Assembly: GCA_025594325.1 (NCBI GenBank)
Contig: JANHCV010000002.1
Location: 248,001-312,000, forward strand
Source: Blastocladiella emersonii ATCC 22665
Taxonomy: Eukaryota; Fungi; Blastocladiomycota
Reading direction: 5' to 3'
Length of the DNA stretch: 64,000 nucleotides
The notes under the pieces are model-generated. The model was given only the letters and a program-made list of their open reading frames with translations. It was not told the origin of the DNA and made no database searches. The first letter of the stretch is position 1. Each line of letters opens with the position of its first letter. The position numbers were made by a program, and so were the translations under genes. Positions 45,986 to 50,767 of this stretch are shown here, piece after piece.

Positions 45986-48900
45986 ATGGATGCGCACATG
46001 AACGGACGGGGGGAAGTGGGAGCAAAGGCCCCCGCGGAGCAATCGCCGCTGCCGCGCACCCCGCCGGCCGCCACCGCTGTGGCACGCGGTGTCTCCAACA
46101 GAGTTGTCCGCCAGCAGCAGCAGAACGGCGCAGCACAGCCACGTCGCGCCAGCACCAACAGCCCGACGGCCACGGGGAACGTCACCGTGACTGACATTGT
46201 GGCGCAGTGCCGAATCTTCGCGTCGCGTTCTGGGTCGACGTCCGCCGAGCAGCCGCCGGCCTCGCGACACGGCCGCCGCAAGTCAAGAGACATTACGAGC
46301 TCGCACTCGCTCGTCGACGGTACGCGCGCCCCTCGCTCGGCACCTACCCCCTTCCCCCGGTCCGAAAACGTCTCCATCCCTGCCATCGCCCACTCGACCA
46401 TCTCGAACTCGGCACGTCACGGGCCTGCTCCACCTTCCACGATCCACTTCACGCTTCGCGACTTGAATCGCACGATCCTGCCTCCCATCCAATCTTCCTC
46501 TCTCCTCGCAGTCCTCCCGTGATCACCGGCGTAGCCCTTGCAGTAACGCAGACCGTGTCGCTGTCGCGTAGACGCCAGCGACTCGTCGCGCCCGCCCAAC
46601 TCGGACCCGCTCCTCGTGCACGCCGACTCGGCCGGCGCACCGTCCATTGTCGTGTGGACCTCTGCCCCGCAGCTCTCCGAAGCCGAGCCGGGCCCGGCCC
46701 CTGATCGCGCCGTCGCACACGCTTCCTCCGCGTCATCTACCTCTACCTCGGCACCGGCACCGGCTCCGGCCCCGCCGCAACATAACATCAACACCATGCC
46801 GCCCGCGCTCGGCCATGGCCAGTCGCAGTCCGACACCCGCATCGCCGTCATGGACACGAGCAGCACGCTGCCGCACCCAAGGCGGGGTGCGGGCGACTCG
46901 CCGCCCGCGCCGTCCCGGTCGGCCCTCACCGCGAGCTCGGCCGTCGGCGGCGCCATGACCACGATCCCGCGCCGCGTCAGCGCGCCCATGGAGCTGCTCG
47001 TCGGTCCGGCGCTGACCGACAGCTCTGGCCTGTCGACGATCGCCAGTAGCCGCGCGACGCCGAGCCCCGTCACGACCATGGGCCGCGGCGTCACCGTGTT
47101 CCGTTCCGGGTCCGACGAGAGCCTGACGCTACACGACACAACGGGCCGCATGGCCGTGCTGTCCGTCAACCCGCCCATGGCCGCCACGTCGTCGGCGGCC
47201 GGCCACGGCCACCACAGCAACCCGCGCCCGCTTGACTATATCACGTCGGCGCTGACGCCGCTGTCGCGCAAGTCGCAGTCCAACAACAACTCGTTCCAGC
47301 AGTCGGGGACCAGTCTGACGAGCATCACCGAGGACCACGACGAGGCCGTGCCCGCCCCGAAGCGCAACAACACGGACCCGTGGTCGTCCGGATCCACCAA
47401 CGGGTCCACGGCGCAGACCACGTCGCAGCCGCGTACCACGTCGCCGACCTACTACACGGCGCCGCTCGGGCTCGGGTTCCCGCGCAGCGGGACCATCGCG
47501 ACGTCCGGGCGCAACTCGCTGCGCGTCGAGGACGGATCCAGCAACACGGACAACATGAACACGTCGCCCAACTCGTCCATCGCCACGTTCCAGTCGACGG
47601 CGTGGAACTCGCCCACGGGCAGCAAGGCCGCGGCCTCGGCCTCGGCCAGCAGCATCATTGCCGGTCCGAGCGACAAGCCCATGTCCGCGCGGCGCACCGC
47701 GCCCGCGTCCGCGTCGTCGGTCCTCGCGCGCATCGAGGCGGGCGGCGGCTCGCCAACACCGCCGACGCGCGTGCGCAGCAACTCCAAGTCGGCGTCGCAC
47801 AACATCGCGCCGCTCGTTCCGCCGTCGCTGTCGATCATGCGCTCGACGGGCGACGTGTCGCCCCTCCCCGGCAGCACACCCGCGATTGGCCCGAGCGTTC
47901 CCGGGAGCAAGGACATCAGCGGGTCTCGCGCACCCAGCGACGTATCGCAGTCCGATATCAAGGCGTCGGCGGACGCGAGCGACCTGGGCGAGGAGAGCGG
48001 GGCCGAGGACCCGCCGGACCACGATCTCGTCGGGCTCGAGCGGCGCGACTGGCGCGAGCTGCCCGTGATCCGGCCCGTGTTCCGCTTCTTCTACCTGCGG
48101 CTGTGGCTGCCGGTGTCGGAGCTGTGCGCGAAGCACGTCGGGTACGCGATGCAGCACCCGGAGGCGCGCGTGTGGGGCATCATGGATATCGTGTCGCGGC
48201 TGCTCGACATGTTCTACCTCATGGTCACGCCGGTGCTCGTCGCGTTCATCTGCGACCTCTCGCACACGTACATCAAGGTGTTCCTCGCGCTCGACGTGCT
48301 CCTGACCGTGTCCGTGTTCCTCGACTACGTGCGGCCGCGGTACGACCAGTACGGCGAGCTGCTCACCGAGTCGACGCGGAAACGGAAACTCTTCTTCAGC
48401 AAGTGGACCAACTGGCTCGAGCTGCTCAGCGTGCTGCCCGCCGACTGGTTCGTGCTCGCGGCGAGCCCGTACTTTTCGGGCCACGTGCACTTCTGCGAGA
48501 ACCCGCGGTACGTGTATGAGGTGGCAGGCGTGTTCTCGACGTCGCCGCTCAACCACATGCACGAGGAGCCGCGGCTCCGCTACATGTACCACGAAGAGTA
48601 CGTTCTCCCGACGCGGTTGCACCACACGTTTCGCTCTTCTCATCCTCACCAGCCCTCCGCGACGTGCGTGCGTGTAGCGATATCGCGAGCATCGTCGTCA
48701 TCTACTCGGGCCTCCGCGCGATCCGCATGCTGCACACCATCAAGACCGTGTTCTGGGTCAAGGACACCAAGATCCCGTTCCTGCGGCGCGCCGTCTCGCG
48801 GCTCGCCAAGAACCTGCTCACGGCCATCTACATCTCGCACTGGAACGGCTGCGTGTTCTGGTTCCTCGACACCCAGCTCGCCGAGGAGAAGCGGTTCATC

Positions 48901-50585
48901 GACCAACGGCTCACGGACCACCACGGGCTGCCGTCCAGCTTCATCTACCGGTTCATCTTCAACTAGTACGTTGACCACCTTCGTTCTTGCTCGGGCGTCG
49001 CACTGACACACTCGGTTCGTGTAGCGTGGACGCGCAAAAGGCGCTCTTCTTCCTCCTGCGCGAGGTCGAGCTGCTGCCCGAGGTCACGTACCAGGCCGTG
49101 GAGATGCTGATCGCGGCCGTGATCTACGGCTCCATCTTCGGAAACCTCGTGTCCATTGTCCGCTCGTTTGACGACCAGGCCGCCTTCGACAAGACGAGTA
49201 CGTGTTCGCTGAGCGGGTTGTTGTCGCGTTGGCTGACACCTCGCCGTGTAGTCAAGAGCCGCAACTTCAAGACGATGCTGCTGCGCAACTACCTGCGCGA
49301 GAACAAGTTCCCGCCACGGCTGCAGCGCAAGATTCTGGACCAGGGTACGCGTCATGGTGGCCGTGGCCATCTTCTCGGCGCTGACTGACTCGAGCTTGTA
49401 GAGGAGTTCGACTTTCTGCACAAGAAGGGCATGGACACGGAGGAGCTGTTTGTCGGCCTCCCGCGGCCGCTGCGGCAGGAGGTCGGGATCCACCTGTACC
49501 TCGAGCTCGTCAACAAGGTGCCGCTGTTCGCCAAGACGGACGACTCGTTCAAGGTGGCGCTGACGGAGCGGATCACGACCATCTCGGTGCCCGCGGGCTT
49601 CTACGTACGTTCGTCGCCGTCTGCTACTCGATGTGCGGACACTGACGCGCCCACTCGCGTGTAGATCTGCAAGGCGGGCGACCCGGGCACGGAAATGTAC
49701 TTTATCCGGCAAGGGTCCGTGGACATCATGCCGGCGGACGAGTCGCGGGTGTTCGTGACGCTCAAGGCCGGGGCCTTCTTTGGCGAGATCGCGCTCATGG
49801 GTACGTGGGCGGCCCAGTGCCGAGTGTCGCCATCAGCTCACCCTGCATCGACGGCGGACATAGAGGACTCGCGGCGCACGGCGACGGCCAAGACGGCCGA
49901 GGTGACGCAGCTGTGCGTGCTCAGCAAGCAGGACTTCAAGGAGATCATGCAGGCGTTCCCGACGATTGCCGAGATGCTGTACAAGCACGTGCAGGATACC
50001 AAGGAGCAGGACGCGAAGCGCAAGCTCGCCGAGGCCGCCGAGAAGCTGCGCAAGGAGCTCGAGGAGGCCGAGAAGGCCAAGCTGCGCAAGTCGCGCCGCA
50101 GCTACATGAGCGGGTCCAAGGACAGCAAGGGTATCCTGCCGCGCATCGTCTCGGGCGCGTCGCGCCGCGTCGGCGCGTCCCGCCGCAGCATCCTCAACTC
50201 GATGCGGTCCGTCGGCGGCACGGGGACGGGCACTGCACACAGTACGGCGACCGGGTCCTCGCTCAACCCCGACGACCGCCGCGACAGCATCAACGCCGGC
50301 AGCGCGGCCGCCGGGCTCGCGCTCCTCCCCACGACCGGGTCCAGCGACTCGAGCAGCCTCGGCGCCGGCGAGCACACGTCCGTGTCGCGCAAGGTGCTCA
50401 CGGCGCTCACCACGCCGCTGTCGGGCATCGCGTCGTCGCAGTCCCCACCGTCCCTGCACAACACGCTGTCGCGGAACGGCGGCGACGGCGTCCGCGGCCG
50501 CCCGCTGCTCGAGCCGGTGCCCGCGGCCGAGGACCACGAGCGGTCGGCCGCGTCGATATACCAGGACTCGAGCAGGGAGCACTAG
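45986..50585 (+). CDS. Cyclic-nucleotide-binding-domain (CNG/KCNH-like) 6TM channel with long low-complexity N-terminus
   Basis: S1-S3 helices; S4 LRAIRMLHTIK; S5 ISHWNGC; S6 MLIAAVIYGSIFGN; C-linker; CNBD ICKAGDPGTEMYFIRQG..FFGEIAL..RRTAT. Multiple short introns; 5' exon 45986-46319 is tentative. Confidence 0.85.
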
Positions 50586-50767
50586 CGTAGACCAGGGGAT
50601 AGAGTAATAACATAGGCATCACATTTTGGGACTGGCGTGTTCATGAAGAGGGGGGAGGGAGAGAGCGGGAGCGCGAAACGGGGCGAGCGGCTTCCTAAGT
50701 CGCGCGCGACCCTCGCCTCAGGCTCTCGCTCTCCAACCAGCAGACTTCCCATGCAAACTTGAATCTC

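Follow-up and report, generated by a model that had tools for sequence, protein, structure and literature searches.

A conserved arginine-bearing loop takes the place of the glycine filter in a family of cyclic nucleotide-binding channel relatives from zoosporic fungi

The gene H9P43_002039 of Blastocladiella emersonii ATCC 22665 encodes a protein that resembles cyclic nucleotide-gated (CNG) channels with regard to its domains and predicted fold but carries an arginine-bearing loop where their glycine filter would be. We studied it in a 64,000-nucleotide stretch of DNA (contig JANHCV010000002.1, positions 248,001 to 312,000 of the forward strand), which we call the window. The gene lies on the plus strand, and NCBI lists its product of 1308 amino acids, here P0001, as a hypothetical protein. 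The same kind of loop recurs across a large clade of proteins, the Arg-loop clade. We put at roughly 45% the probability that P0001 is a cyclic nucleotide-gated protein with a remodeled, side-chain-lined and still-functional pore that is not a K+ pore.

The pore region of P0001 lacks a glycine filter

The spliced pore region of P0001 reads RFIFNYVDAQKALFFLLREVELLPEVTYQAVEMLIAAVIYGSIFGN and contains no GYG, GFG or TIGE motif. It is encoded by two exons, whose elements, including transmembrane segments S4, S5 and S6, are listed here in window coordinates.

48678 to 48965, plus strand: exon with S4, the S4-S5 linker, S5, the turret and the pore helix.
48706 to 48756, plus strand: S4, with basic residues R784, R787, H790 and K793.
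48838 to 48852, plus strand: HWNGC of S5, residues 825 to 829.
48966 to 49024, plus strand: intron of 59 nucleotides in the pore region, GTACGT...CTGAC...TAG, with an in-frame TAG that overlaps the donor.
49025 to 49197, plus strand: exon that completes the pore helix and then encodes the glycine-less loop, S6 and the C-linker's first residues.
49047 to 49064, plus strand: codons of F875, F876, L877, L878, R879 and E880, the replaced filter stretch; R879 is at 49059 to 49061.
49074 to 49169, plus strand: S6, about residues 884 to 915, which holds E886, E893, Y901 and F905.

The upstream exon ends in ...SSFIYRFIFN and the downstream exon continues as (Y)VDAQKALFFLLREVELLPEVTYQAVEMLIAAVIYGSIFGN; S4 reads SGLRAIRMLHTIKTVFW. 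A preliminary description of this DNA had given the same pore sequence, coordinates and splice, an S4 that keeps only R, R, H and K, and a preserved S5 HWNGC, S6, C-linker and cyclic nucleotide-binding domain (CNBD). Each of these points was borne out, and the NCBI model of H9P43_002039 has the identical junction across the pore intron.

An artifact in which a missed exon supplies a normal filter, or a decaying pseudogene that has escaped selection, is scarcely credible. The intron signals are canonical, the traced model agrees with NCBI's and the reading frame stays open for all 1308 amino acids, whereas retention of intron 48966-49024 leads immediately to an in-frame TAG. The patterns G[YFL]G, [TS][IV]G[EDQ] and T[TVI][IV]G are not encoded in any plus-strand frame of window positions 48000 to 50650, so that the reported absence of GYG, GFG and TIGE holds for this DNA as well as for the protein. 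Moreover, in the genomic DNA of three relatives a single unbroken exon covers everything from the pore helix to the start of S6, loop included.

Blastocladiella britannica orthologue, L004, 3331 to 3501: single pore exon, reading ...FIMNYVDGQKALFFLLREVELVGEAGYQAGEMLIAAVIYG.
Allomyces macrogynus AMAG_03903, L002, 3086 to 3448: single pore exon.
Sorochytrium, L003, 2669 to 3076: single pore exon.

Because these relatives have a one-exon pore and the plus-strand frames hold no filter motif, a hidden filter exon in H9P43_002039 can be regarded as excluded for practical purposes. We likewise rejected a pseudogene, as the gene is under purifying selection and its loop shows synonymous changes only (see below).

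Domains and predicted fold place P0001 among CNBD channels

P0001 matches Pfam PF00027 (cNMP_binding) at 7.1e-20, and Ion_trans at 17 bits, below the cut-off, in a span that covers S1 to S5 and ends before the pore. In phmmer, the core of the protein (residues 585 to 1110) matched SthK at 5e-31, through S6, the C-linker and the CNBD, and it matched CNGA1-4, CNGB, TAX-4 and HCN1-4 at 1e-21 to 1e-29 (CNGA at about 1e-28). Single exons gave concordant signals. The exon at 49665-49800 alone matches cNMP_binding at 2.9e-10, that at 48678-48965 weakly matches Ion_trans and the S4-S5/S5 region of plant GORK and SKOR, and the second half of 49025-49197 weakly matches S6 of SthK and hERG; the first 19 residues of this last exon had no match in the single-exon search. 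A word search with the S1-S3 part returned P0001 itself as the sole match. The phosphate-binding cassette reads FFGEIALMEDSRRTAT (G-E ... R-T-A), with its cyclic nucleotide-contact residues intact. Across the Arg-loop clade the Gly of this cassette is invariant and its Glu and Arg are at least 90% conserved.

An AlphaFold2 monomer built from a family alignment of 44 sequences reached a mean predicted local distance difference test score (pLDDT) of 91.6 and a predicted template modeling score (pTM) of 0.72. It has six helices, S1 to S6, a pore helix at residues 859 to 874 and a nine-residue non-helical loop at 875 to 883 (pLDDT about 95), and its S6 extends into the C-linker. This model replaced a shallower run on 19 sequences that was poorly packed (pTM 0.52; loop pLDDT 51 to 66). 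Foldseek matched the model to CNGA1/B1, CNGA2, CNGA3/B3, HCN1/4, TAX-4, SthK and Eag1, with E values of about 1e-25 over about 505 columns and an identity of about 19-21% to the CNG and HCN structures. Given the agreement between the Pfam and phmmer matches and the predicted fold, P0001 genuinely belongs to the CNBD-channel superfamily, in its domains as well as in its fold.

Two narrower assignments were rejected. P0001 is not a CNG channel proper (CNGA, CNGB or TAX-4): it has no T-I-G-E(D), it has an Arg at or beside the acidic position, and it falls in a separate clade. Nor is it one of the K+-selective CNBD channels (BeCNG1, SthK, MloK1, HCN), as neither the protein nor the plus-strand frames hold G-Y-G or G-F-G.

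The S3-S4 loop (window positions ~48479-48597) is unusually long, about 40 residues, and AlphaFold2 folds it into a small three-stranded sheet (residues 741-744, 749-751 and 763-765). In an alignment of ten Blastocladiomycota transmembrane domains, Cys656 after S1 (48251-48253) and Cys737 in the S3-S4 loop (48494-48496) are invariant and are accompanied by a C-x-x-P-x-Y ... R-Y-x-Y pattern. Going by this conservation, the two cysteines could form an extracellular disulfide or belong to a small ectodomain that fixes S4.

The loop is the signature of a widespread clade

Word searches returned about 25 close relatives, all from Blastocladiomycota, and every intact one reads (A/S)(L/I)(F/Y)F(L/I/M)-x-R-(E/D). 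An exhaustive profile search with the transmembrane domain alone (alignment A2) found 401 proteins at E<=1e-3. Among these, at least 92 distinct representatives carry Arg at position 879 after six columns that are free of Gly, and R879, E886 and E893 are conserved in 100% of the 92. Other positions vary, with Phe, Val or Tyr at 875, Phe or Leu at 876, and Pro, Leu or Phe at 878. By alignment, the clade signature is hydrophobic-hydrophobic-x-x-Arg, without glycine, in place of T-T-I-G-E or C-I-G-Y-G. P0001 carries all of its elements in F875, F876, R879, E886 at the start of S6, and E893 seven residues later.

Taxon look-ups for 30 of the Arg-loop representatives traced them to Blastocladiomycota, to Chytridiomycota of many orders (Polychytrium, Borealophlyctis, Gonapodya, Chytriomyces, Phlyctochytrium, Gaertneriomyces, Cladochytrium, Dinochytrium, Fimicolochytrium and Zopfochytrium) and to two holozoans, Pigoraptor chileana and Chromosphaera perkinsii. 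Among 68 sequences spanning S4 to the CNBD, a tree placed all 44 Arg-loop proteins in one clade with a Shimodaira-Hasegawa-like approximate likelihood ratio test (SH-aLRT) value of 100. The TTIGE sequences formed a clade of their own, also at 100, and the Arg-loop clade stood apart from both the sampled TTIGE-type and GYG-type channels. An alignment of the 44 has nine invariant columns, including R879, E886, E893 and the cassette Gly. Since members occur in fungi and in holozoans, we suggest that the clade dates to early opisthokonts. A search of the accessible literature for a description of the family returned nothing beyond BeCNG1, and the clade is apparently an old, undescribed family of zoosporic fungi and unicellular holozoans.

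B. emersonii itself has at least four Arg-loop paralogues, and Allomyces and the chytrids have many. P0001 forms an orthogroup with P0002 of B. britannica and P0009 of Catenaria (support 98/99). A second B. emersonii protein, P0041 (H9P43_002412), has the loop FFIPRE and is encoded on the same 2.84 Mb contig as H9P43_002039, 1.09 Mb away. It shares the clade, the invariant Arg and the Glu pair with P0001 but represents a different paralogue lineage, as the P0001 orthogroup has Leu rather than Pro before the Arg. The third, P0042, has the loop YFMPRE, and P0076 (H9P43_001890) is a fourth, more distant paralogue. The preliminary description spoke of a channel that had lost its glycine. The filter is indeed without glycine, but a private degeneration is too narrow a frame, because the loop is conserved clade-wide and ranks among the best-conserved transmembrane segments.

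Pfam finds just the CNBD in most of the family members that were scanned, and for this reason most are called hypothetical and some are mislabeled. Members or neighbors of the family are named "Kinesin-like protein kif27" (P0065, P0081 and P0087), "Cyclic nucleotide-gated olfactory channel" (P0083 and P0126) and "anaphase-promoting complex subunit Hcn1" (P0051) at NCBI, names that look like transferred misannotations.

Three further observations concern other proteins that the searches returned. P0010 (Coelomomyces lativittatus HMI55_001117) reads FPFFFFFFFFSFSFRNDT where its relatives have the loop and S6, which probably reflects a faulty gene model, for example read-through of an intron in AT-rich DNA, and not a true variant. 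A second non-canonical group from chytrids comprises P0051 (Rhizoclosmatium sp.) and P0054 (Irineochytrium annulatum), with the loops TFPLGYK and TFPVTGY; a small tree places an HCN-like CIGYG sequence as its sister, so that the group represents a different departure from the standard filter. Finally, P0145, P0170, P0175, P0186 and similar weaker matches (1300-2400 amino acids) contain channel repeats in tandem, two to four per protein, with a GYGD-type filter and a CNBD in each, and resemble the multi-repeat CNGK channels to which BeCNG1 was compared.

The invariant arginine lies at or beside the CNG acidic position

In three of four alignments (MAFFT with canonical sequences, the profile alignment and hhalign), the residues opposite T-T are F875-F876, while Ile is matched by L877 and the glycine by L878. 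Directly after the glycine position thus comes Arg879, which in the MAFFT and profile alignments stands opposite the Glu or Asp of the CNG pore loop. The hhalign alignment instead sets a two-residue gap at E-T, and another MAFFT run deletes G-E. Either way, the invariant Arg is predicted to occupy or adjoin the position that determines the cation selectivity of CNG channels. Two earlier statements need adjusting accordingly. LLRE had been placed on TIGE, which is one position off in most alignments, as F-F-L-L occupies T-T-I-G in three of the four; and the loop, described as several residues shorter, is shorter than those of CNG and HCN channels by one to three residues, depending on the alignment.

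Further along, in S6, the profile alignment pairs Y901 and F905 with the Phe and the Val of ...LIFATIVGN, from a canonical CNGA-like protein. These are the cavity-gate positions of CNGA1 and TAX-4, in keeping with the title of PDB entry 6WEL.

The pore domain is under strong constraint

When column information is averaged by segment across the Blastocladiomycota family, S6 reaches 0.79, the CNBD 0.72, the C-linker 0.71 and the loop 0.70, compared to 0.55-0.59 for S1-S4. In the ten loop codons, LFFLLREVEL, the orthologues of B. emersonii and B. britannica show five synonymous differences and not a single non-synonymous one. Over the aligned core of these orthologues, the proportion of non-synonymous differences (pN) is 0.20 and that of synonymous differences (pS) is 0.70, with a pN of 0.115 in S6; because synonymous sites are saturated, the ratio of non-synonymous to synonymous rates (dN/dS) can be read only qualitatively for this pair. 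As shown by these sequence comparisons, P0001 is intact and under selective maintenance, with a pore domain more constrained than its voltage sensor.

Remaining structure of the gene

The window's introns are of a fungal type (GTACGT...CTGAC...TAG) in DNA of 64.6% G+C, and the pore intron resembles the five other introns traced downstream of exon 1. By peptide-to-genome mapping, the H9P43_002039 record is identical to our traced model across exons 2 to 7, including all junctions. The parts of the gene outside the pore region are as follows.

46040 to 46318, plus strand: N-terminal coding exon, P0001 residues 3 to 95, exact peptide-to-genome mapping.
46571 to 48597, plus strand: large exon with the low-complexity N-terminus, then S1 (about residues 629 to 655), S2 (660 to 684), S3 (708 to 731) and the long S3-S4 loop (732 to 770); GTACGT donor at 48598.
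48598 to 48677, plus strand: intron, GTACGT...TAG.
49252 to 49344, plus strand: C-linker exon.
49402 to 49604, plus strand: exon with the remaining C-linker and the start of the CNBD.
49665 to 49800, plus strand: CNBD exon; FFGEIALM, at 49776 to 49799, is the first half of its phosphate-binding cassette.
49864 to 50585, plus strand: last exon, with the rest of the cassette, R1073-T-A (49875 to 49883), the CNBD C-helix, a KE-rich coiled-coil-like stretch, a low-complexity tail and the stop.

Residues 1-2 (M-P) of the NCBI model do not map beside the exon at 46040 (window ~45990-46040), which may mean that the annotated start is wrong or that it belongs to a very small exon further upstream. Up to about residue 590 the protein is rich in Ser, Thr, Pro and Ala, of low complexity and without a detected domain. 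The pore intron splits the codon of Tyr867; Catenaria has an intron at the same place, and B. britannica, Allomyces and Sorochytrium have none there. Several further intron positions also differ among the relatives, indicating that intron gain and loss have been active in this gene family.

A remodeled pore and its alternatives

On the reading that we favor, P0001 would assemble as a tetramer whose CNBD binds cAMP or cGMP, and the C-linker would relay this binding to S6 in the manner of CNG channels. Gated in this way would be a remodeled central pathway whose lining is made of side chains, in an Arg/Glu ring, and not of a glycine-dependent carbonyl cage. Because that cage is missing, the pathway should not be K+-selective, and it may favor anions or another non-K+ species. 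The charge-poor S4 makes a ligand more likely than voltage as the main stimulus. We prefer a functional pore because conservation in the protein is highest in the gating apparatus and the loop, and because HCNL1, whose pore is dead, differs in its unconserved loop, its lack of cyclic nucleotide gating and its Met-interrupted string of arginines.

Altered selectivity has an experimental precedent. When the pore-loop Glu of CNGA2 is replaced by Arg or Lys (E342R or E342K), the channel is still gated by cGMP and becomes anion-selective, with a PCl/PNa of 10-14 and a conductance of 1-2 pS (PMC2151509). Since the invariant Arg lies at or next to this Glu, the precedent lends support to a change of selectivity in the Arg-loop clade. 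A specific form of this idea, which we consider unlikely though not negligible, is that the clade consists of natural cyclic nucleotide-gated channels with inverted (anion) or other unusual Arg/Glu-based selectivity, the invariant Arg doing naturally what E342R does in CNGA2. If so, cAMP or cGMP signals, for example from rhodopsin-guanylyl cyclases, might drive anion fluxes in wall-less freshwater zoospores and flagellated holozoans, with depolarization or volume regulation as the outcome.

Several points weigh against a conducting, remodeled pore. The precise register of the Arg against the CNG Glu depends on the alignment. Four arginines at the mouth could simply block the pathway, or the charge of Arg879 may be offset by E886 or E893, both invariant, or by position 880, where an acidic residue is frequent. 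After the loop, the stretch REVELLPE carries a net negative charge, unlike what would be expected of an anion pore. The CNGA2 mutants, for their part, retained the T-I-G backbone and conducted only 1-2 pS (PMC2151509). A conserved loop would also fit a conserved plug that seals a dead pore.

Such a plug is the core of the main rival, which we hold to be possible but on balance doubtful. Here the loop with its Arg and Phe residues closes a non-conducting axis, and the protein serves as a membrane-anchored cyclic nucleotide sensor or scaffold or as a modulatory subunit. Replacing the filter glycines in K+ and HCN channels yields non-conducting, dominant-negative subunits, as cited in PMC7306766. 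The loop of P0001 is hydrophobic, its invariant Arg and the two invariant Glu could form closing salt bridges, and these Glu partners and the net-acidic stretch after the loop fit a plug as well as an open pore; the long low-complexity N- and C-termini, moreover, could act as scaffolds. Yet S6 and the C-linker are the most constrained parts, as expected if something is gated. The subunit version, in which P0001 would co-assemble with glycine-bearing subunits such as BeCNG1 in the manner of CNGB or silent Kv subunits, meets further difficulties. Known modulatory subunits retain a glycine filter and are much closer to their partners, whereas the Arg-loop clade sits on a long, separate branch, with the low identity to CNG and HCN structures given above. 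The multiplicity of paralogues in B. emersonii, Allomyces and the chytrids also fits poorly with it, as does an Arg-loop member in a Gonapodya species, given that G. prolifera is reported to be without BeCNG1 (PMC9616733).

A third possibility, with a dead central pore and a flow of protons or ions through the voltage sensor S1-S4, appears improbable. It has a precedent within the superfamily and in a flagellated cell, the HCNL1 of zebrafish sperm (PMC7306766), and P0001 shares with it a non-canonical pore motif; the third basic position of the P0001 S4 is, in addition, a His. The voltage sensor, however, shows the lowest conservation within the transmembrane region, and its S4 has only two arginines that are conserved in the clade, where HCNL1 has a long string of them with one Met. 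We therefore rejected a close analogy to HCNL1, which the preliminary description had raised beside a non-conducting regulatory subunit and an altered selectivity, in view of the conserved loop, the intact cyclic nucleotide-contact residues and the charge-poor S4 of P0001.

Significance and comparison with known channels

Glycine-based filters are treated as a hallmark of the pore in K+, CNG and HCN channels. Here, a large clade keeps the remaining cyclic nucleotide-gating machinery under selection while its filter is a conserved Arg-bearing loop. If these proteins conduct, they would represent a new solution to selectivity in P-loop channels, possibly the first natural cyclic nucleotide-gated anion channels, and would add a hitherto unknown branch to cGMP/cAMP signaling in zoospores; together with rhodopsin cyclases they could also find use as optogenetic effectors. 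Should they prove non-conducting, they would provide a conserved case of a channel scaffold reused as a cyclic nucleotide sensor. What is new here is that the clade is monophyletic and includes holozoan proteins, that it has an invariant Arg/Glu/Glu triad, that relatives encode the pore in a single exon, and that the CNGA2 mutants offer a precedent.

Among known channels, the best sequence and fold matches of P0001 are the animal CNG channels (CNGA1-4/CNGB and TAX-4) and SthK, which have the same arrangement of S1-S6, C-linker and CNBD. They also share the charge-poor S4, the intact G-E...R-T-A cassette and hydrophobic residues at the cavity-gate positions. P0001 differs from them in having no T-I-G-E, with Leu at the glycine position (Pro or Phe in its relatives) and an invariant Arg that takes, or directly follows, the acidic position of the pore loop, which is one to three residues shorter. 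Its long, structured S3-S4 loop and its separate clade (SH-aLRT 100) set it further apart. The CNGA2 mutants E342R and E342K likewise place a positive residue at the acidic position, but they keep the T-I-G backbone, whereas the Arg-loop family also exchanges T-T-I-G for hydrophobic residues and shortens the loop.

HCNL1 and HCNL2 of fish sperm belong to the CNBD-channel family too, combine a non-canonical pore motif with a flagellated cell, and differ from P0001 in the features already weighed. The pore of HCNL1 is dead and its loop unconserved among orthologues, cyclic nucleotides do not gate it, and protons cross its voltage sensor through the Met gap in the long Arg string (PMC7306766). 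By contrast, P0001 has a strongly conserved loop, a charge-poor S4 and intact cyclic nucleotide-contact residues. The closest known system by organism is BeCNG1, the cGMP-gated K+ channel of B. emersonii zoospore phototaxis, which carries the K+ signature GYGD (PMC4046227). BeCNG1 belongs to the same superfamily and has a CNBD, whereas P0001, the product of the separate gene H9P43_002039, has FFLLRE in place of GYGD. The two proteins would plausibly act downstream of the same cGMP signals.

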